Of a DNA stretch of 64,000 bases, positions 10,057 through 63,819 are shown piece by piece; position 1 is the first letter of the stretch, and each line of letters opens with the position of its first letter. Below the pieces are notes generated by a model. That model was not told where the DNA came from, did not search any database, and was given only the letters and a program-made list of their open reading frames with translations. The stretch is from Dimorphilus gyrociliatus (taxonomy: Eukaryota > Animalia > Annelida). The translations under genes and the position numbers were made by a program. The DNA lies in assembly GCA_904063045.1 (NCBI GenBank), contig CAJFCJ010000012.1, forward strand, positions 434,001-498,000, in the 5' to 3' direction.

Positions 10057-11121
10057 ATGGCTACATTACAGAAACCAAAAATTAACAAGTACGAATATGT
10101 GGAGTCAAGGATTAACTCTTTGGAAAAAGTATCTCATGTAGCTGGTGGTGGGAATATTCAAATTAAAAACGAAAAACTTATCTGGCAAAAGGAATCTAAA
10201 GTGAAATCCCTGGAAAATTTAAGTTATAAACCACCTGAAAGTCAGTTGAAAATTACAGATGATAAACCGAAATGGCAAGCTTTATCGAAAGTTAAATCGT
10301 TGGAAAATGTTAGTTACAAACCCTCTCAACCAAATTTCTCTATAAGGCATTATCAAACAAACTGGAATACTGATTCGAAAATTCATTCTCTCGAAAGAAA
10401 AAATTATAAGCCTGCAACTCCTAAGATAAAAATCGAAAATCAAAGTCTTAATTGGAATACTAATGCTAAAATAAATTCTTTAGAGAATATATCTTACAAA
10501 CCTCCTGAACCGTCTACTTCAATCAAACAAGAAAAATTGAACTGGAAATCAGAATCAAAACTTCAATCGTTGGCAAATAAGGATTATAGACCAACTACTC
10601 CCAAAGTGAAAATTCATAATACTAATCTCCAATGGACTAAGGTATCTAAAATAAACTCGCTGGAAAAAATAAACTATAAGCCTATGGAACCAACGATAAA
10701 TATAAGAAATGAACCGTTAAATTGGAATGCCGAACCAAAAGTTGGTTCGTTAGTCAATAAAGATTACCAACCACCTACCTCTAAAGTCAAAGTATTGTCG
10801 GATAAATTAAATTGGAAGGTCAGCTCCAAAATTAATTCTTTAGAGAATATTTCATATTCTCCAAGAGAGCCAGAAGTTAAAGTTAAAAATGAAAAGTTAA
10901 TGTGGAAAGTCGAGTCTAAAATTAATTCACTAGAAAACAAAGAATATACACCAAGACCATCAAATAAGAAAATAGGTCATGAAAAATTACAATGGAATGT
11001 GGATGCCAAGATTGGTTCTTTAGAAAATAAAGATTATCGATCAAAAAGCCCTACAGTTCAAATAAAAAATGAAAAATTAAATTGGAAAAGTCAAGCAAAA
11101 ATAATTAATAAAGATCATTAA
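10057..11121 (+). CDS. Intronless tau/MAP2-like microtubule-binding repeat protein, 354 aa, 11 repeats
   Basis: Repeat 1 (ESRINSLEKVSHVAGGGNIQIKNEKL) matches the tau-type SKIGSLDN..HVPGGG..I...KL repeat. Ten more 30-aa repeats follow. Confidence 0.8.
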   Translation: MATLQKPKINKYEYVESRINSLEKVSHVAGGGNIQIKNEKLIWQKESKVKSLENLSYKPPESQLKITDDKPKWQALSKVKSLENVSYKPSQPNFSIRHYQTNWNTDSKIHSLERKNYKPATPKIKIENQSLNWNTNAKINSLENISYKPPEPSTSIKQEKLNWKSESKLQSLANKDYRPTTPKVKIHNTNLQWTKVSKINSLEKINYKPMEPTINIRNEPLNWNAEPKVGSLVNKDYQPPTSKVKVLSDKLNWKVSSKINSLENISYSPREPEVKVKNEKLMWKVESKINSLENKEYTPRPSNKKIGHEKLQWNVDAKIGSLENKDYRSKSPTVQIKNEKLNWKSQAKIINKDH

Positions 11122-28693: not shown

Positions 28694-29817
28694 TTATTTC
28701 TTCTTTTTACATTTGCATTTCAACATTCTAATTAGCTCTCTTCTGTAGATTTTGTTGCATGAAACATAAATTATCGGATTAATTAGCGGTAGCAGGACAA
28801 TTAAGATTGTGGTTATGACATGTTCGAGTCCAATAATATCCGGGTTATTCTTTATCATGTCGACCACTAGCCTAACCTATGGAATAAATAAGAAATGATA
28901 GGAAGACATTTAAAATTAATAGTTTTTTAAAACGCTATAATTATTTTACTTACGAAAAAAGGAACAGTTAATAAAGTGTTAACCGTTGCAATAACTTTTG
29001 TAACAAGACTAAACATTTCAAATTTCTCTTTCCCATACTTTTTTATGTTAATTTTTCTTTTTAATGTATCCAAAGCGTATTCTATTCTACTCTTACGCTT
29101 TTCTTCTATAGTTTTATTATATTCAGTTTCACTGTCCATCGATATGAACTCTTTCATTTCGAATGTATTTTTATTATTGTTTGGTGTAGTTTTCCCTCTT
29201 TTTTCAGCCAACCTTGCTGCTATTAAACTAGTAATACAAACCATAAATGCATTACCTAAGCCATAAATGACCAGATAGGATAAGATGAGAGTGTGAACTA
29301 CATTGTTCTTTCCAGCTGTTACGTCCAAACCACATATTCTATTATCTTGATAATAATTGTATGGCACAGTTAATCCATATAAAGGTAGAGAAGTTATGAC
29401 CATATTCAATATTCCTATAATTATGATAAATATAAAAACATTTCTAATACTCATAAACTCAAGTAATTTAAAGTGTGTTGTTAATAGGATATATCGATGA
29501 GTACTTAGAAGCGTCACAACAAGTATAGACGTCATAAAACAGACAAACGATACTAATCCCATTATGTTGCAAGTAACATTGTGTCTAAATTCATCGCAAG
29601 TTAATGTGTTAATTAAATGTTGAGTGACTAAAATTGAAGCGTATAATAAATTAGAGATCGACATAAGTTTAATAAGAAAATGAGTAAGAGTTTCCTTCTT
29701 TAATCTTAAACGGCATAATAGAATCATAACAACAAGATTTTCCAATATACCAATAAACAGTGTTACCGGAATTTCAGCCTTCCAGACTATTTCTCTCGAG
29801 CAACTTGTATTGTTCAT
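28694..29817 (-). CDS. Orphan rhodopsin-class GPCR, loosely prostanoid-receptor-like; 2 exons (29817-28954, 28876-28694)
   Basis: Seven hydrophobic segments, TM1 Asn, TM3 Cys, HRY at the DRY position. Exon 2 supplies the rest of TM6, TM7 with NPIIY and a CKC tail. Confidence 0.88.
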
Positions 29818-46221: not shown

Positions 46222-47272
46222 CTAGTGACAAGGCGATCTGGAAGCCGTTCCAAATGGAGATGGCTCTTTTCTTAACCATGGAGTATTTCGTCTAAATCCA
46301 AAATTACCGTTGAAACCAATGACAGGCTTTACCCCTTGCATAAATTGTCCATGTCCATCGATTGTTTCTCTCGAATGTCCCATACCACTTTGATTTCTTA
46401 GTAAGAGATAATGCGAACCTGGACCCTCTCTAGCAAATCTGTCCATAGTTTTTCCTTCTATGGACGTGTCTTCCGGCTTTTTCTGATTTTTACAAAAAAT
46501 AGTATTACATTAATTTTATAAGGAAATTAAAAGAATACTTAAACACGGAAATAACTACTTCTAACGTCATTAGACAAGCCTATATTTTATCTAAGATTAC
46601 TTAGTATCGCACGATGTACTTATAATCTTTATAAACTTTTGAATATATTAGTGAAAACGTCTAATTTTATTGGTATAATGATAAAATATCAGGCTAATTT
46701 CATATTTTATGGCTTTTTTCTACTGAACTCGGCCCCTTCACAAATAATAAAGGCCTAATAAACGTCAGCAGTCTACTGATTAACTGCTACAGATCTTATG
46801 ATCTAGTATCAAACTATGAGAAAATATCATTTAGCTACATGCATTTTATACAGTCTTGAACGGTGGTTGATATATAGTAGTCATGGTCCTATTTTAGGAC
46901 ATTAGATAAAAAGCAAGATTTACGAGATAGCTAAATTTTCTTTATATCTACCTGTCTAGTTTTGTCCAAAGTCTCTTCAACCCCGAAAAAACGGAAATAA
47001 GTATCGCAATGCTTATCTCTCTGAGAATTATAAGGGGGTATAACTGGTCCTAGCTTTGGATTAGTTTTTGAATAATCAATCGAAATGGAGCTTGAAGCAA
47101 CAGAGTCCAGAACAAAGTTCTTTTCTTTGGTTTGTAGCGCTTGAGGAGGGGGTGTTGGAGGGGTTTTATAAATTTTATTTACGCTCCTTCTTGGTGACCC
47201 AGAAGCTCGTCTCGGTGATTGGTTTCGTTGGCTTGGTGCTTTATCTGATTTAGTAGGCTGGTTTTCCGTCAT
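46222..47272 (-). CDS. C17orf98: C17orf98/SPMAP1 (DUF4542) homolog, ~193 aa, 2 exons (47272-46952, 46482-46222)
   Basis: EKNFVLDSVA...IPPYNSQRDKHCDTYF and GFNGNFGFRRNTPWLR match the human protein as I recall it (EKGFILDGVA...IPPYNAQQDYHARSYF; GFNGRFGYRRNTPALR). Confidence 0.82.
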
Positions 47273-47554: not shown

Positions 47555-49123
47555 CTAAGCAATCTTTCTTTCAAGTATATGACTTTTTTGTTCAAGAAAA
47601 TTTAAAGAAATAGGAATATTCACCGGTCTCGTAACTTTCAGATGATCCTTAACTTTTTGATTACTAAAATACCATCGTGTATGTTGGTCAAAGAAAGCAT
47701 CGTATTTCGGCAACAAGTCGCGATACCTTATAAGAAAAAATTAGATTATAAGCTAATATTTTATCATATATTTTTTATGTTAAAAAAATTGTTTATTTTA
47801 ATTCAAATTGGAGATATAACCTTTGCTTAGAATGGCTTGCTAGTATTGCGTCATTCACAAATGATTCTTCCCTCTTTCGATGTAGGACTGTATCCTCTTT
47901 GCTGATACTTCTAAGCATAGATGATCTTATTAAAGGTTCTTCCAAAGGTATTAGCGGCAATTTCTTTTCGCTTGATGTTGGAGATAAAGAAGACTTTGAA
48001 TCTTGCCTGCCAAATCCTTCTTGAGAATTTCCAAATGTCATTTCGTCCTAAAATAAAGACTATTACGTCAGAAATGCAAAAAAAAGGAGTTAAAACAAAA
48101 CTTTTTCTATTTTTTTTTTATTACTTTTTTTTAATATACCATTTTTTTATCTTATTAAACACTTGAGATATTAGTATAAAAAACATAGCTTACGAGAACA
48201 AATTTAAAGAGTTTATGGATTGTTTGTAAATGAAATATTAAATGTTTCGTTTAGTTCGAGTTATTAAGTGCTAAATAAGATTAATATTAAAAATATTATA
48301 TATTCAAGTTTTTAGAACTTGAATATATTACAGTTTAAATAAAAAGATAAATTGTCTATTTACCTGAAATTCCTTAGGTTTCTTCCAATTAGTTGTATAG
48401 CAAACTGGATAGAGAGGTTTCCAAAATTTCTTTTGTTTTTGTACCATATTACTAACTCCTCGTTTGTTGAAATATGTTTTGCAAGCAGGATCCTTTGTAG
48501 CATCGTATGGTGGTAATAGATTCCTAGTTGTTTTGGCTTATTAAAGAAATAGGTGATAAGTCAAGTTTTTAATAACGTTCAATAACTCTGATAATATTAG
48601 ATACAAACTTGCTGAAATTGCATCATTGATGAAACCATCTTTGAAGTCTTCGCTTTTAGTTGTACTTTTTCTTGATTTTGCCTCTTCCGCAGCTCTTTTA
48701 TCTTTTAAATCTTCTACAAATTTTTTGTCTTTTCCCTCATCTTCCATAGCTTTCTTTTTTTTCTCCTCCTCCGCATATTTTCTATCTTCTTCCTGAACAA
48801 TTATTTACATGAAAAAAATAAGGAAAATGCTTTCCTTTGTAATCCACACCTGAAAGAGAACTTACCAGAGTTATTTTTAACAACTTTTGTACTCTAGGAC
48901 TGCCAAAGTAAGATTGGCATGCTCTATCTGCTGTTGCTGAATATTCCGGTATGATAGGCTTCTTCCTTGGTTTATTATATATTGAAACACTCACGCCATC
49001 ATTAACAAAAGGACTCTCATGCACAGCTCGTTTAGTTTTTATTGGTTTTGGAATAACTGCAGGAGGAATAATCATGGGCTTCCATGTAACCTTTATAGGT
49101 GAAACTTCTGCTGCCTTCGACAT
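47555..49123 (-). CDS. Protein with three copies of the DUF4542 N-terminal motif, 5 exons; 3' end uncertain
   Basis: In-frame splicing gives three F(V/I)ND..........P.Y....D.....YF units separated by charged linkers. Confidence 0.72.
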
Positions 49124-51114
49124 TATCAAAGTTTGGAGGAATAGTGCCTAAATTATTCTAAAGCGGTTGACTCAAGTCTCTAAATATTGATAATGATTTA
49201 GATAAGTTTTAAATGTAAACTTATCAGATTTTTAGCTTGATATATTGTGCATTGGACTAAGCTTAAAAAAGATAAGAATTTAGTGACTTTATTTATGATT
49301 ATAGATATGTAGGTCGACCGATGACCTTCGCAGTTTTAGATTTTTGATAGCGTAAATAAAAATATAAACATAAGATTCAATTATTAATGATCGTTTAATT
49401 GAAAATTAGTATACTTATTTGAAAAAAAATTGATAAAAAGAATTTATCTCTATCATTTTCATTCATTAAATTTATTCGTTTTTTATTAAAGTTTATCTAT
49501 AAGAAAAGTAAGAAAAAACCTTATTTCCTCAAATCACATTCTATGCAGGAAAACGTATTTGGAAAAGTTGTAATAAATTACGGGAAACTTTTTTAATCAT
49601 TTTTCTGTAAATAATTTATTCAGAAAGCACTAAGCCTTAATCTCCTTAAGATTAGTTTGTCTATAAACTGATATCCCTTACAGATAATCATTTGGAAGTG
49701 CTAATAAAGGTATAAAAATGTGAAAAAGGTAATTTATAACAATTTAATAAACTTATTAAAGATTATATATCTTTCAGATATTGTATCTAAAGAGACGATA
49801 ATTAATCAATTTACGTCATTACGATATATATGCCATTCCAATTGGGTATATAGTATAATTTCCGTAGGCCTAATTAGAGACTTATTGTTACACATACTTC
49901 AAAAGGAAATGATGAAATCGATCCTAGTAAACTTAAAAATCATAGTTAAAAGCAATATTATAAGATTTAAGGTGAACAAAGAAAAAAAAAGAAAATGTCG
50001 GTCAAAAACTTTTGTAGATTAATAAAAAAAATAAATTCGAAGAAACTCCATTAAAGAAATTCTGTGATAATTGTCAGTTGCGACCTTGTAGCTTTTTAAT
50101 TACTTTTTTTTTTGCTTGGTGATGTCAATGCCCTATTAGACACGTATCGTCTGTTAATTTGTAAAATTTACTCTTATATTATTACAACTAATGACTCTTT
50201 AATCCTTTAAACATATATAAAATTTATTAAATAAAATAAGAAAGCAATTTTTGCTTATTTGTTTTGCTTTTATTTCTTTTTTTCTTATGATAAAATAGTC
50301 TTTTCAAGATAATTATTTTCTAGCATAAATGCCATTTTGAGTAAATTTATCAACAAATATTTTATACGTGGTGGGGGGGAGCTAATACTTTTTAAAATAA
50401 CTTTAAAGCTCGTTAAGTATAAGTAAACTTTAATTAAAACATGTTTTTATAGATTATATTCTCTTCGAGTCTTCTTGATTCAATATTTAGAATAAATTGA
50501 ATTAACTTTCTATTAAGTATTATAAATAAACTATCTACGTGACTAGAAAGAGACAAATTACTAATATATATTTTGTAGACTTGACGAGTCAGCCAGCTCC
50601 ATCTACAATCTATTTTGAACGTTTTTTCAAAGCTATATTACAAAAGTAAAGAATGAACATTTAAGAAATATTTTTAGGTAAATAAGGCGGATCGTTTACA
50701 ATTTCTCATTGACACAAAGCCAATTAGCAAATCGTAAAAGTCTTATAGACCTATTATTATATACAAAAATGACTCTCATCTAAAAAGAGAGGAGAAAGTT
50801 AACAAGAATACTAAATAATCGATCACTAGTCTATTCCTTAAAGACTATAATGGTAGAACAATAGAGATAATGGTCGTAGTATGCCATTAGCTTTGAACGA
50901 CCTTTTCCTAATCGGCATCTAGAATTACCTTAACGACCAACCAATGTTTATGGTAACAAGGAGCGTCGATATTTTACATAAATATTAGTTGACAGTCATT
51001 TTACTCTTGAAAGTTTCATTGAATGAAGGAAATATACCATTTCAATGAAGAAAACAATCATTTTCCTGAAGGATTGTTAAAACGGATTTATCTACAAACT
51101 TTCTACTTAACATT

Positions 51115-55587: not shown

Positions 55588-56914
55588 CTAACCAAATCTA
55601 ACACCATTTAACACTTTTCTATACCATTTATCTATTAACTTCCCTCTATCCTGCTTTTCCTCTTGAAGTTTTCTCTCCTTAAAAGAAATAAAAATAGGTT
55701 ACCACAATTAAAAGTGAAGAAACGAGGTTCTCAATAAAAACTTTGCGTTTTATCAATAAAAAGATTAAAACTTTTATCTAAATATAGCTACTCTTAAGTT
55801 CTAAAAGTCCAGAAAGCGAACTCTAATTTAGAAAGTGTAAGCCAAGGAGGGAACACTTATCAAAGATAAAAGTAACCAAAAGGAGCATCGTATAATAATA
55901 ATAGATAATATAAATTTTTTCCAAAATGATTTTTATATTAAAAAAAAATTGGGATTAACGTTAAATTTTCCCGATAGATGGCGAAATTTAATCAGACTAT
56001 GTAAATAATTTTTACAAGATTAACTTGCGTAAATAATAAATAAGCTAATGACAACGGTCGAAGAAATGTTGGACTCTTAAATACGTTGATATATAAAAAC
56101 CATATAATCATTTTCTCTTCTGTGTAAATTACAAATACAAAATAAGTCAAGTAACTAAAATACTGTTTTCAGTAGAATTAATATATTTTAACTATTTAGT
56201 TTACTTTTTAACATTATCACTTACTTTTATAAGCAAATACAAAAATGTTTGGAATAACATGTATATAGTGATAAGGCATATTTCATACAAAAAAGTATTG
56301 CCTCATAACTTTTTATTCTAATGATTAGATATCATATTGATTACATTCCTTTAATAAAAATCTTGTAAAATAAACGATTAATTCTATTCAAGTAATTTTA
56401 AATGAAAGAAAAATGAAAGATATAAAGATTTTTTTTAAAAGATTATTTAGTTTATAAAATATATTTATATTTACTGTTTCTATTGTCTTTTGCGATTTTT
56501 CACACCAAATCATCTTAAATGTATTTTTTGCCCAAATCTCTTCTAAACCTGCGCAGCATTTGTACTTGCATAGTTGAATGTTTTGAAATGATTTTAAACC
56601 CAATTTGCAGCAGATCTGTAAAGAAATGAAAAATATGGTTATATGGGGGAAATATGTAAAATATAATACGAAATCTAAGCTTTATTTATATATTTATAAA
56701 ATTTTATATATAGCTTGTTTAAATATAGAGTTATTTGTAAAGATTATATACATATATACATTTTCTAAGTGTTATACATGTTGTTGACATATCTCATATG
56801 TATACGTATATGCCAAGCTTTTCTTTAAAATATAAAGAAGTATACCTGATCTTCTGAATATGAGAAAGAGATGAGAAGAAAGAGTAAAAATAGCGTATCC
56901 GATTTTGGCGACAT
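55588..56914 (-). CDS. Cys-rich RFamide precursor B, 99 aa; exons 56914-56846, 56615-56475, 55677-55588
   Basis: MSPKSDTLFLLFLLISFSYSEDQ | ICCKLGLKSFQNIQLCKYKCCAGLEEIWAKNTFKMIWCEKSQKTIET | ERKLQEEKQDRGKLIDKWYRKVLNGVRFG*. Both introns are phase-0 GT-AG. Confidence 0.85.
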
Positions 56915-57685
56915 TCTCCAGAGACTTTAAATTAATATTTATAACGAGGCAAGTATACTACTAAATATAAGAAAGAGCTACGCCTGCGCAGACTCTGATT
57001 GGTCGAGAAGATATCTTTATCTACTGTCGGTTGATTACGCAATTTTCATTTTTTTTGCGCTAAAAGCTAAAACTTGTTTAAGTGGTCTGCGTTCAATGTA
57101 AAAAGTAAAAGCTATTATTAACGTATTATATATGTATTATATGAACATGTATTCAATGTATATGTATAGTATACAAATGCTATTTGTATAAGAATGTATT
57201 TAGATTATAAGCACGAATTAATCAAAAATTATCTGTACGTAAATTTTTATTATTACTCTTAACGGAAGTTTCCAAACTATTTCACTTTATTCTGGGATAC
57301 TGACGAATATTAACTTTATTCAACAAAGAATAAACTAAATAAACCTTTACTTCTTTCGTACATTCAATTTCTGTTGAAGTCAAATTAATTATACTTTATT
57401 AATAAGATGAATATAGAAATTAGCTTTGTAGATTGTAGATTTGTTGATATTTCTACTTTTATTTTATTAAATTAACTTTTGAGGTCAGAATGACATATTT
57501 TTTCTCTTTATTACGAACATTGATCATTCCTTTTCCATAAAAAGAACAATAAGTTTATTGGTACTATCACGTCGTTTCTCAAAAAAATTCTCTGGTAATA
57601 TCAACGAAAATATATTTTCATCGAACTATCTAATGTAGAACGGGAATGTAAATCTTTCACATAATAATATCGTATCATTCGTCAA

Positions 57686-59066
57686 TTAACCAAATCTAAC
57701 ACCGCTTATTAGCATTCTATACCAATGTTGAATGGACTCGGCCCGAGCTTTCTTTTCCTGCTTCAATTTTGCTTCCTGCAAGGAAAAATAATTATTAATA
57801 AAAGTATTAGAATAATTCAAATATTCCACATTTTTGTTTATCTATTAAAAGAGAAAAATACATTGAGTATCTATTACCTTTAATAGTGTTTCTGCAGACT
57901 TATCGCACCACGTTATTTCAATATTAAAATTAGCCCAGTGTTCGGTCAGACCATCGCAGCATTTATTTCGGCAAAGTTCAATCTTGTATATATATTTTAT
58001 TCCCAAAGAACAGCATTTCTGAATGAAATAAACAATGGAAAGGATAACCGCAAGAAAATAGAAAAGTCTTGAATTACGACAACTATAGGTTGAATAGTTT
58101 GTTTATAATGAAGAAAAAATAAGCAATAATGATATCTAAGAATAAACAGATTGCCATAAAAATTTATTAGAGACTATTTTTTAAGATTAGTGTCTATTTT
58201 TTTCTTGATGCTTGTTGAATAATGTAATTTAAAATATCCATTGACGAAACATATAAAGACAATATATTGATTGGCATTAAATAATTTACGTAATTATGGA
58301 ACCACTAGTAACTTCAAGAAGTTGCTTAGATTTAGATAAGCTACACGTGTAAAGAGATTATAGTTGATACCAAAAATTAGTGCAAATTTGTAATACTTTT
58401 TTTATGTCTATAAGTGTATATGTGAGTGTGTGTGTGTGTGTGTGTATCTCTAAATGTATGATTACATTGAATAATATTAAAAAGTACACTATTGCACAAA
58501 AGGCTGCTATATTTTTTGTTACACATCCCTCTTTTTCATCAAAGTTGAAAAGGTAATGTTAACAATCTTTAAATGCATTTTCTCAATTAGGAAACTAGCC
58601 TTTTTAATTCACCAAAAGGAACTCTTTTCATTATTATTAGTTATTTATTATAAACTGATTAAATGTTATACTTTTAATATTTTGTTAAATAATCAAATAC
58701 TATGTAGTAGTTATAAAGATTTTATAGTAACACACTCTCTTACGTTTGCTTTTCTATATATAAAATAATAGGTAGGTGGCCATGATGACTAGATGTTAAA
58801 AAGGAAGTTGTAAAAAAAAAGGTTAAGAAAGAAGTAATAGACATTGAAATACAGACAAAAGGTTTTAGATAACAAAAATTGATTATAAAAGTAGTATATA
58901 TAAGATAAACTTTGCTCAGATTTGTATTAAAAAAGTTAAAAGTTTGAGACCATCATACGATAGATTTATCTTTAAACATTAAGCTCACCTCTGACGAAAC
59001 ATAAGTGTAGCTAGAAAACAGACAAAAAAAAAAGACTGCTGACCAGGTTTGAGAGAACATTACCAT
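57686..59066 (-). CDS. Cys-rich RFamide precursor A, 102 aa; exons 59066-58989, 58018-57878, 57775-57686
   Basis: MVMFSQTWSAVFFFCLFSSYTYVSSE | KCCSLGIKYIYKIELCRNKCCDGLTEHWANFNIEITWCDKSAETLLK | EAKLKQEKKARAESIQHWYRMLISGVRFG*. Exons 2 and 3 (141 and 90 nt) are the same size as in paralog B. Confidence 0.85.
58426..58445. repeat. (TG)n microsatellite in intron 1 of RFamide precursor A
   Basis: Direct TG run. Confidence 0.85.
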
Positions 59067-60762
59067 CTTTGAGAGATTACTGGGAGAAACTTATTTATAT
59101 GTGTATGAATATGTTAATAAATACAAGCCCTATGCTTATTGGTTTGAGGACTGTAGCAAAAATATAGACGCCTAATAATCATAATGTTTTAGACTGTGTT
59201 TAACTAGTCAAATATAGTGAGAATACATTAGCAATGTCCATAAATTCAAAGTAAAATCTAAAAATAAACTTATATCACTATTAATACCTTAAATTACGGT
59301 AGTTACAATAGTTTTCTTAGTTTCACTTCAGAATGTAAAAGTGAATGTCGTTTAAAATAATTTTATCTTCCTTTTCTCTTTGTAATATTTCTACTTTTAA
59401 TAGAATAATATGAAAATACGGTAAATTTGGAACTAGGTAAAACATTTGCTAATCAAGTTTCCAAGAATATCCTATTTGTGACTTTCCTCTATAGGAGAAT
59501 ATAAAGCTCAAAAATAATTAGTAAAGGAACATGACAATCAAGAACAAAAAAATTATAATGAAACTTTGTTACTTCTCATTATCGACATTAATTCGCAATG
59601 CTGAAAACAAGATATTTTTCACCTGCAGCAACTAATTTAGAAATGAATTCACCTCTAAATTAAGAACTGGATTATGAATTAGACAAAAATATTTAAATGA
59701 CATAATTACAATATTTATTCATAACCAGTCTATCTTAAAATTAGATATTAGACATAATCATTTCAATAAATAGATTTTATTCGCGTTCATAATATTTGTT
59801 AACAGCTTATAATTTATAGTTCTGAAGTTCTCTATTAATATTATTGAGTTCATTTAACCTTTATTTTGAATAAGAAGTGAAAATAGCTATTCAGCAGTTT
59901 ATGATGTAATTTTTTCTTTGATCTTCGTTTTATTTAACAAAAATACTACTTTTGCATGTTTTATATACTGTATATATATATGATATATATAAATATGGTA
60001 TTTTCAGATGTGTAGTCTGTACTATGTAACGTAAAGGACAGTAAATATTTCATCTTTAGCAGATGATTTCCTTGTTGTTATATATTAGATAAAGAGCAAA
60101 TCATAAGTTTTCATACTACTTTAAAAATTTTAAACCTATCCCACACGTATCTATATATAATAGATGGCGCCTGTATCTCAACTATGTTTATTCTAGGAAA
60201 GATACTGGTGCTATAGACCACATACCAAAAGTAATTTAAAAAATGAATATACCATTGTTATTATCATAGTCTTATCATATATAGCTCATTGTAGGTATTT
60301 AAATTTTTGAACCTGGATATTGTTAACTGTTTTATCTATATAATTTTAATAAAATACTGTATAAGATTTTGAATATTGTAATTCGTTTCCAAATGTTAGT
60401 TATTATAGTTAAATATGTCCTAATTGCACATATATAGTATACTATAAATAAAGAAAAAACACTAACAATTAGAGCACGGAATATATACTTTATGATGCAA
60501 TTGATTATTATACTTGTAGATATTCTATAATACAAACATTCTCTTTAGTATTATTTAGAAAAATATTAAAATATATACTATCGTCTAAAAGTGGGTGGAT
60601 AGTCGTTAATTCTTCGTTAGTCTTCAATCACTTTTAGCCTAAAACTTTATTGATAGTTTAATTACTCAATTTGTTTATTCATCAATAACGCCCACTTGTA
60701 TTTATATACTTTGAAGTTAATTAGTAAACTTCATTTGAAATTGATTACTATTCAAGAAATCA

Positions 60763-62074: not shown

Positions 62075-63819
62075 TTATTTTCTGCCACCACGTTTATGCA
62101 ATCTGAATGACATGTAGTCTATGAAATTAAAGAAGAAAAAATCGATTATTTCAAGCAGGCTTAATATAGTTGATCCCAATATCAATCCAAAAGCTCCTCC
62201 CACATCGGATAAAAATGCTAGTCCAGTATAGCCTTTCTTGTCAATTATTTCAGACACGGTCAAAGTTGAAAAGTAGACTTTAAGTATACAATATTGATTT
62301 AAAATGAATTTTCTCGTTTGTCCTAATGCTTCACTGTTAAGTTTATCCATAAAAAAATTTCCAGCTGAATTATGCGATATTGTTTTTAAATATTCTGTTG
62401 TTTTACACATTGGTAAACAATTACATTTTTCTACCATTTGATTGTTAACGTAGTCAAAAGTTTTCTTATTTGCGCATTGCTGTTCTAGTACGCTACATAT
62501 TTTGGAATTCCCAATCATATATATGTCCTTGCAATGACATTTACCAATTACATAATCTGATAGACATTTTAATTTACAATTTTTAACTGTGTAGTTACTG
62601 TCAGGATTACAATTGCCATAGGGTTTAGGAAGGTTAGATTTCCTAATGACAGAAAGAGCAATATTAGTTTGAGTTCCAGGACTTAAAAAAACTGATTCGT
62701 CATCTCTTAATGGTAAATCACTCTTGTCATGTACGAATACCTAAAAAAGAATTAGTATACACAATTGGCAAAGGTGTCTTTGTATATATATACTGTACAT
62801 ACTGTATATACTGTATATACAGTATATATCAGATTGTATTGCAAGATCAGAAACAAAAGCACTGATAACCAAATAATTTAACCATCTTAATGAAACAGTT
62901 TGACATTTTAACTTAAATTTTGCATTTAATGAGATCAAATTCTAGTTTTAAGGATTTTGAAATATCAATATTTAAATACACGGATTTTTGTTATCGAAAT
63001 AGCAATACAATGAGTAAGATTAGCATTTAAAATTTTACTCTGTATCCAGCTGCAGGTGAATTTAGAGTAAAATAATCTTGTTGTCCAACAAATAAGAGCA
63101 TATCAAGTGCGAAAATAGAACCTTCTTGGCTTATTTTCCTTGATATATTATCATTATTAAACTGATAGCATAAACCCAAATCAGTTATAACAGAAGTTAT
63201 GTTTTCTCTGCTGCATGCAGTTTTCTTGAAAGTGCACTGAAAGTTTATAACAATCTGCAATAAAGATTGTTTCTATATATCCAAGTTTCTATTACCTGTT
63301 GTAATTCAATTGCTGATCTAAATGGATAAAGTTTTTCGTAAACTTCCTTAAACGTCGTGTTCCCTAATGTGTTAAATTTTCTTTTTTCTGCTTCAGTTAA
63401 TTCAGGAGCCAAAGGATTATTTATAGTCTCAAAAATTTCTGTTAAATCTTTAAAGAAAAATGAAGTATTTTCAATAATATATTAAATCTGCTTAAGAACT
63501 CACTGAGAATCTCTGCTACCTTTAGTAGATAACGATTTTCCGAACATATAGTAATTGTTGGAAAAATAAGCGATTTTTCATATCTATATTTAATATCCGT
63601 TTTAGACTTAAAAGAATAGTACGCTTTTGTTCTATTAGTTAGTTGAAAAATCATGAAACATAATCCAAAAAGAACAAGTATAGACCATGTTATTCTTCTC
63701 TTTGTAGAATTATGAGATGAAAGAAATCTTACACCCTTAAAACTTGATACTGCAAAATAGAAATCTAATTTTTTTGACCAGAATATTTTAAAAGTATCGC
63801 TTTCCAATTCTTCTTCCAT
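62075..63819 (-). CDS. DEG/ENaC (ASIC/FaNaC superfamily) channel subunit, 4 exons
   Basis: TM1 W...., FPTITIC, GLCYQFN, Cys-rich thumb (CHC, CNC...C) and TM2 LSDVGGAFGLILGSTILSLLE. Confidence 0.92.

Follow-up and report, generated by a model that had tools for sequence, protein, structure and literature searches.

Two adjacent genes on the minus strand of a 64,000-nucleotide stretch of the Dimorphilus gyrociliatus genome (contig CAJFCJ010000012.1, positions 434,001 to 498,000; hereafter the window) encode small proteins that combine a signal-like N-terminus, a six-cysteine domain and a short tail terminating in GVRFG-stop. These genes, called here A and B, are very probably a tandem duplicate pair of real genes. 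Judged by its sequence, their cysteine domain is not an orphan; it is a member of an unnamed family of secreted type, the same as that of a protein from the brachiopod Lingula, and this family is conserved across phyla, with annelid, brachiopod and several environmental eukaryote sequences. Structural models are suggestive of a compact, beta-rich, knottin-like module. We tentatively propose that A and B are prohormone-like precursors, each of which would give rise to a knottin-like peptide and an amidated RFamide tail. To read the pair as RFamide prohormones is plausible, though unproven, and their RFamide ending is lineage-specific.

Structure and coding status of genes A and B

Both genes were spliced by script from the sequence of the window, and their positions are given in window coordinates. 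Each has three exons and a complete reading frame, of 99 amino acids in gene A and 102 in gene B:

56846..56914, minus strand: gene A exon 1, 69 nt; ATG and 23-codon signal-peptide exon MSPKSDTLFLLFLLISFSYSEDQ, GT donor, phase 0
56475..56615, minus strand: gene A exon 2, 141 nt; entire six-cysteine domain CC-x12-C-x3-CC-x16-C, AG acceptor and GT donor, phase 0 at both ends
55588..55677, minus strand: gene A exon 3, 90 nt including TAG; charged linker, EKQDR site at 55645-55659
55591-55644, minus strand: gene A 17-mer plus Gly, within exon 3; terminates GVRFG-stop
58989..59066, minus strand: gene B exon 1, 78 nt; ATG and 26-codon signal-peptide exon, GT donor, phase 0
57878..58018, minus strand: gene B exon 2, 141 nt; six-cysteine domain, 45% identity to the gene A domain
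57686..57775, minus strand: gene B exon 3, 90 nt including TAA; charged linker, EKKAR site at 57743-57757
57689-57742, minus strand: gene B 17-mer plus Gly, within exon 3; terminates GVRFG-stop
56938..56943, minus strand: TATAAA 29 nt upstream of the gene A ATG; possible core promoter, weak evidence in DNA of ~27% GC
59094..59099, minus strand: TATAAA 33 nt upstream of the gene B ATG; possible core promoter, weak evidence

All four introns (230 and 797 nt in A, 970 and 102 nt in B) are of the GT...AG type, in phase 0 and with pyrimidine-rich acceptors, giving eight canonical splice sites. A (GT)n microsatellite lies within the first intron of gene B (58424-58448). Exons 2 and 3 are of equal size in the two genes (141 and 90 nt), the cysteine spacing is exactly the same, and the G, E, W and WC-x-K-S of the domain are conserved; a K/E-rich charged linker then leads in both to WYR-x4-GVRFG-stop. 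The N-termini of A and B are hydrophobic and signal-like, with small residues before the predicted cut (...SFSYS/EDQ and ...YTYVSS/E, read from the translations). The splicing thus reproduced what a first-pass annotation of this DNA had described, namely two three-exon genes of secretory design with this cysteine spacing, K-x-x-R sites and a Gly-stop amidation donor. That annotation had also called the pair hidden from the open reading frame track, which is only partly right: pieces of every exon are present there as frames of 29-71 amino acids.

The resemblance between the two genes is not due to chance. When the D. gyrociliatus assembly (77.9 Mb, 349 contigs) was searched with gene A exon 2, gene B exon 2 was found at E 2.3e-9, and gene B exon 3 found gene A exon 3 at E 8.6e-4, in the same order and orientation. 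Across exons 2 and 3 the proteins are identical at 36 of 76 residues. Identity at codon positions 1, 2 and 3 is 0.64, 0.75 and 0.46, and the ratio of nonsynonymous to synonymous differences per site (pN/pS) amounts to 0.40, synonymous sites having reached saturation (pS 0.76). No alignment is possible between the introns, which are also unlike in length, and the exons of both genes are richer in GC (34-37%) than their introns (22-25%), in a window whose GC content is 26-37%.

A third paralog, gene C, was found elsewhere in the assembly:

G000:C16:706156-707460 (L003 839-2143), plus strand: paralog C; four inferred exons, RKRR site, tail ending ILNSSR-stop

Its layout is that of A and B, with a signal exon followed by a domain exon, here of 156 nt and with the same six cysteines; the short exons 3 and 4 were inferred by eye. 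All six cysteines are therefore retained in the three paralogs, and no further copy of the family was found in the genome at E <= 10. Taken together, the codon pattern, the pN/pS ratio, the unalignable introns, the GC contrast and the existence of paralog C suggest that A and B are old duplicates under protein-level constraint rather than chance open frames.

Both genes appear to be unannotated, since they are missing from the published neuropeptide-precursor list of D. gyrociliatus (Martin-Durán et al., PMC7854359, supplementary file 5), which contains none of GVRFG, WYRKVLNG, WYRMLISG, CCKLGLK and CCSLGIK, and from a collection of 5.8 billion proteins. In the latter, a word-indexed search with the exon-2 frames, which failed to return genes A and B themselves and from which records of this genome may have been withheld, found no protein of 47-170 amino acids sharing even three 5-residue words; paralog C was likewise without a match in the protein-collection searches. 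The species of the assembly agrees with that of the precursor list, as a 56-residue stretch of the FVRIamide precursor published there is matched by the genome at 100%. If A and B were duplicates in decay, or open frames due to chance, and were never expressed, one would indeed expect their exons in no protein of the public collections searched, and no trace of them in a precursor list based on transcriptomes. We nevertheless consider this very improbable: both frames are intact with all their splice sites canonical, the codon positions show constraint despite synonymous saturation, and the six cysteines are kept in three paralogs, and conservation of the domain and of its exon layout extends across phyla.

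The cysteine domain, its relatives and its predicted fold

The three D. gyrociliatus domains were combined into a profile, with which 1.84 billion representative proteins were searched exhaustively. The search gave 13 matches at E <= 0.001 (1.5e-11 to 8e-4), 12 of which are convincing; the other, P0004, is probably spurious, being a low-complexity repeat protein. The convincing relatives share the signature CC-x-[KR]-G-x-K-x7-C-x3-CC-x-G-x2-E-x(12-15)-WC. In an alignment of 15 rows the K, four of the six cysteines, the E and the W are invariant, and the first cysteine pair and the G are present in at least 90% of the rows. A second, word-indexed profile search with full-length relatives added no members, and no Pfam family was matched on eight relatives.

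The sole named relative is LOC106174919 of Lingula anatina (XP_013412146/7), an 'uncharacterized protein'. Its domain is encoded by one exon of 135 nt (L004 11450-11584), bounded by cag and gta and by phase-0 introns, which sits between an exon ending in a signal-peptide-like segment and a terminal exon of 15 codons. The layout of signal exon, phase-0 domain exon and short terminal exon or exons is thus common to A, B, paralog C and Lingula. The Lingula tail, of 15 residues, has no clear dibasic site. The remaining relatives (P0022, P0009, P0001, P0013 and others) are gene calls on environmental or host contigs. P0001 carries two domains in tandem, while P0022 and P0009 are full-length mRNAs from a JGI (Joint Genome Institute) sample taken to be a soil metatranscriptome, and encode a signal peptide, a Q/R-rich pro-region of ~70 residues, the domain, a basic site and a 9-mer tail (RLRKR/HVALKSSLH-stop in P0022, RIKKR/HAPVNKVLT-stop in P0009).

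The supplements of the spiralian catalogue of ~1,300 precursors (Thiel et al. 2021, PMC8557429) contain no CCMKGLK, CCQKGLK, CCMRGLK or GVRFG; the Lingula motif is missing from them. The first-pass annotation had presented A and B as the best candidate for an undescribed system. The cysteine domain has relatives in brachiopod and environmental sequences, in a family that is unnamed and without a Pfam entry. Because the RFG end is not shared by these relatives, it is the cysteine domain that is the conserved, and probably the bioactive, element of the family.

AlphaFold2 models of the gene B domain and of P0022 were built from the 15-row alignment. Their confidence, as the predicted local distance difference test (pLDDT), is 88.5 and 90.2, and both are all-beta with the same three strands. 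Such a prediction had been put forward by the first-pass annotation as a check on its proposal, and the models are beta-rich and suggestive of a knottin-like fold. In an exhaustive structural alignment against 48,161 PDB representatives, inhibitor-cystine-knot (ICK) peptides ranked top for both models, at Z 3.5-3.8. J-atracotoxin-Hv1c was matched at Z 3.5 and 3.8, 35-36 of its 37 residues being superposed with root-mean-square deviations of 1.9 and 1.8 A. Lower in the ranking came further spider toxins together with purotoxins 1 and 2, tachystatins, conotoxin GS and AgRP, the match to purotoxin-2 reaching Z 2.9-3.1 over 42-43 residues. Other searches were less informative. Foldseek against the PDB gave no match at E <= 0.001 (all E > 1), the structure search of the ESM Atlas returned only generic small disulfide domains (IGFBP-, Dkk- and prokineticin-like) at a template-modelling (TM) score of ~0.55, the ESM Atlas feature search gave no usable match, and comparison of the profile with PDB sequences gave nothing meaningful, with no sequence similarity to any solved chain. 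We graded the domain as knottin-like at a suggestive level because a Z below 4 is weak, although domains this small cannot score much higher. The cysteine framework is also different, CC-C-CC-C here against the canonical C-C-CC-C-C of ICK peptides; in the literature, the framework 'CC-C-CC-C' was found only inside longer conotoxin frameworks.

These matches bring in a different view of the two proteins. Purotoxin-2 is a modular toxin, in which an ICK/Cys module is followed by a C-terminal helix. By analogy, A and B might act as intact, uncleaved secreted proteins made of a knottin-like module and a cationic, partly amphipathic C-terminal helix, possibly amidated, with a defence, antimicrobial, toxin-like or pheromone role. 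This is possible, if somewhat doubtful. The structural matches of both models are dominated by ICK toxins and antimicrobial tachystatins, as it would predict; however, Z values below 4 may mean only a generic small disulfide-rich arrangement. The remaining evidence on this point comes from the tail.

The C-terminal tail and the candidate RFamide

Both tails end in an R-F-Gly amidation donor (GVRFG-TAG in A, GVRFG-TAA in B), and peptidylglycine alpha-amidating monooxygenase (PAM) has as its classical substrate a terminal Gly that precedes the stop. The only DNA segment shared by A and B above noise is the last 38 nt of the coding sequence, with 82% identity against ~59% in the rest, and within it the WYR and GVRFG codons are identical base for base (55591-55626 and 57689-57724, minus strand). 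Such codon identity in spite of saturated synonymous sites could reflect codon bias, gene conversion or a constraint at the nucleotide level. According to these figures, the extreme C-terminus is the most constrained part of the genes, a pattern that resembles that of receptor-binding amidated peptides.

A second feature of the tail is its separation from the domain by basic residues. A basic cluster followed by a tail of 9-18 residues recurs in the family (KQDR in A, KKAR in B, RKRR in C, RLRKR in P0022 and IKKR in P0009), which speaks for cleavage by a convertase between domain and tail as an ancestral trait. In gene A the tail also contains an internal RK, and in gene B an R at the same place; the shorter products VLNGVRF-amide and (M)LISGVRF-amide are therefore as plausible as the 17-mers.

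We propose the following scenario. The signal peptide would be removed, and the six-cysteine domain would fold into a compact, beta-rich, knottin-like module with three disulfides. A proprotein convertase would then cut the basic site between domain and tail, which is K-x-x-R in A and B, and RKRR, RKR or KKR in the relatives. PAM would use the terminal Gly to leave a C-terminal ...GVRF-amide, carried by the 17-mer or, should the internal RK or R be cut as well, by the shorter VLNGVRFa or (M)LISGVRFa. A single precursor would in this way supply both a knottin-like peptide and a lineage-specific RFamide, each of them secreted. The results establish the gene structure, the coding constraint, the family to which the domain belongs and the fold predicted for it; that the products are secreted, disulfide-bonded, cleaved, amidated and active in signalling is part of the proposal.

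Several observations weigh against this scenario, besides the failure to find the exon-2 frames in the large protein collection. Only the tandem pair has the RFG ending. Five loci were scanned downstream of the domain exon, and they contain neither R[FYW]G-stop nor R[FYW]G followed by K or R, and a scan of paralog C and Lingula for [RK][FYW]G-stop in the same region gave none either. The tails of Lingula, P0022 and P0009 end unlike those of A and B, none of them in RFG. The C terminus of paralog C reads ...RKRR/DTLKRILNSSR-stop, and its KR-ILNSSR aligns residue for residue with the RK-VLNGVR of A, so that C stops exactly where A continues with F-G. The RFG end reported by the first-pass annotation is thus present in A and B, whereas no homologue seen ends in RFG and paralog C stops at the aligned Arg. 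The cleavage sites of A and B are moreover the weakest of the set, for they are monobasic, an Arg preceded by Lys at P4, and not KR or RR; K-x-x-R is a recognised but less reliable convertase motif. The fold matches are toxins and antimicrobial peptides, not hormones. Finally, since the part conserved across phyla is the cysteine domain, the tail might serve as a spacer or form an attached helix.

If the tail were a mere spacer, only the cysteine domain would be bioactive, as a hormone or ligand of knottin-like type that lophotrochozoans have conserved, and the linker and tail would be a discarded propeptide with an incidental RFG. The annelid, brachiopod and environmental sequences do conserve the domain alone, and the tails vary in length and sequence, with the RFG end only in A and B. 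We hold this to be unlikely all the same, as WYR and GVRFG are kept to identical codons while nucleotide identity elsewhere is ~59% and synonymous sites are saturated. In addition, the core of the tail is recognisable in C (RK-VLNGVR in A, KR-ILNSSR in C), which is unexpected for a discarded spacer.

If the tail were instead an attached helix, the protein would remain whole, as in the purotoxin-2-like view. The net charge of the tail (+4) and the hydrophobic moment of 0.84 in gene A fit this idea, the latter being marginal (shuffle p 0.035), and so does the weakness of the K-x-x-R sites for a convertase. However, amphipathicity is not significant in B or C (p about 0.2), the strong RKRR, RKR or KKR at the equivalent place in relatives argues for cleavage, and the strongest constraint lies at the extreme C-terminus, as in receptor-binding amidated peptides.

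The prohormone-like reading can be extended further, and the extension is more doubtful than the reading itself. A and B may belong to an unnamed lophotrochozoan, possibly wider, family of peptide hormones made of a knottin-like three-disulfide ligand and a short C-terminal peptide. With its tandem duplication in Dimorphilus, the tail would have become a new amidated RFamide, so that an RFamide neuropeptide would have originated afresh out of a cysteine-rich hormone precursor. The receptor could be one of the orphan G-protein-coupled receptors (GPCRs) in the protostome RFamide/Wamide expansion, or a DEG/ENaC channel, for example that encoded 3 kb upstream.

Neighbouring genes and comparison with known peptide systems

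The window holds further recognisable genes around the pair:

62075-63819, minus strand: DEG/ENaC (PF00858) gene, ~3 kb upstream of gene B and on the same strand
28927-29817, minus strand: single-exon rhodopsin-class GPCR (PF00001), ~26 kb from the peptide genes
46931-47272 and 48782-49129, minus strand: neighbouring exons, both SPMAP1-like (sperm microtubule associated protein 1, PF15075)
10057-11121, plus strand: 354-amino-acid open frame with many Tau/MAP tubulin-binding repeats (PF00418, E 1.6e-47)

As both neighbouring exons match PF15075, a tandem SPMAP1-like pair is suggested. Among solved chains, ASIC1/2 come closest (E about 1e-11) to the exon of the DEG/ENaC gene that contains the second transmembrane segment (TM2), and no FMRFamide-gated channel is found among the 15 solved chains that match this gene at E <= 1e-5. 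A ligand-channel pairing of A and B with this neighbour would be pure speculation; the closest solved chains are ASICs, and the adjacency may be coincidence.

If A and B are expressed and processed as proposed, they would bring a new, unnamed family of cysteine-rich secreted peptides to the spiralian signalling repertoire, new with respect both to the catalogue of ~1,300 proneuropeptides and to the D. gyrociliatus list. An RFamide ending would have arisen de novo on the tail of an unrelated precursor, which bears on the recurrent and much-debated origins of RFamides, and a miniature annelid with a compact genome would offer a concrete ligand candidate for orphan receptors. Should the RFamide reading fail, a domain family present in annelid, brachiopod and environmental eukaryotes, with a confident knottin-like model, would still be a useful annotation target.

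Cysteine-rich peptide precursors with an amidated end are already known as a kind. CCRFamide, which the first-pass annotation had listed among annelid cysteine-rich precursors, is an arthropod peptide. That of Carcinus maenas (PMC6158917 supplement) has five single cysteines, C-x6-C-x3-C-x9-C-x2-C, without CC pairs, and RRPMRFG-KR directly after the last of them. It resembles A and B in that a cysteine-containing peptide follows immediately on the signal peptide and in its RF-amide end; orthology can be ruled out, given the arthropod-only reports, the different cysteine framework and layout and the lack of sequence similarity.

Agatoxin-like peptides (ALP) are of the ICK type, and the CCWamide/ALP precursors share with A and B a small, secreted, cysteine-rich design and an amidated aromatic C-terminus derived from Gly-stop. 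They have eight conserved cysteines, with the amidated residue right after the cysteine peptide, a non-conserved N-terminal propeptide with a cleavage site, and an intron of non-zero phase inside the peptide (Thiel et al. 2021, PMC8557429). In contrast, A and B have six cysteines directly after the signal peptide and the RFG ~38 residues past the last one, no propeptide, and phase-0 introns outside the domain, which rules out CCWamide/agatoxin-like identity. D. gyrociliatus possesses its own CCWamide-like gene, and several published precursors of this species end in Gly-stop, among them this one (...KLFG-stop) and the myomodulins (...LRMG-stop), amidation sites being a class of the colour key (PMC7854359); this is a point in favour of the scenario proposed for A and B. 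We also noted, on another contig, an open frame for an eight-cysteine CCWamide/agatoxin-like peptide ending ...KKLFWG-stop (G000:C32:245093-245194, plus strand; L015 about 1500-1612). Its identity to the CCWamide-like precursor published for D. gyrociliatus is only 68%, so that the frame is probably a second paralog, which the published list lacks.

The annelid RFamide precursors (FMRFamide, NKY, sulfakinin-like GGRFamide and NPY/NPF) share with A and B an R-F/Y-Gly motif after a helical stretch, with aromatics ~10 residues upstream. A and B differ from them in having no RPR[FY], no repeated copies and no GKR/GRR flank, and in the C-terminal location of the motif. In NPY/NPF, a peptide of ~36 residues comes right after the signal peptide and ends in RPR[FY]-amide, with GKR or GR and a C-terminal flanking peptide after it; in A and B, GVRF-Gly-stop comes after a cysteine domain, and identity with NPY/NPF was ruled out by comparison with the five D. 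gyrociliatus precursors of this type. Our results agree here with the first-pass annotation, which could match the pair to no FMRFamide, NPY/F, luqin or sulfakinin precursor; neither GVRFG nor either of the CC motifs occurs in the published list.

The likeness to ICK peptides and knottins lies in the predicted three-strand beta structure and in best matches that cover almost the whole toxin, and the difference in the CC-C-CC-C framework, in Z values of only 3.5-3.8 and in the lack of sequence similarity to solved chains. The closest systems are the family's own members. Unlike A and B, they have no RFG, the soil mRNAs carry the ~70-residue pro-region and P0001 has two domains; yet Lingula LOC106174919 and the environmental relatives share the domain signature with A and B, and Lingula the exon layout as well.

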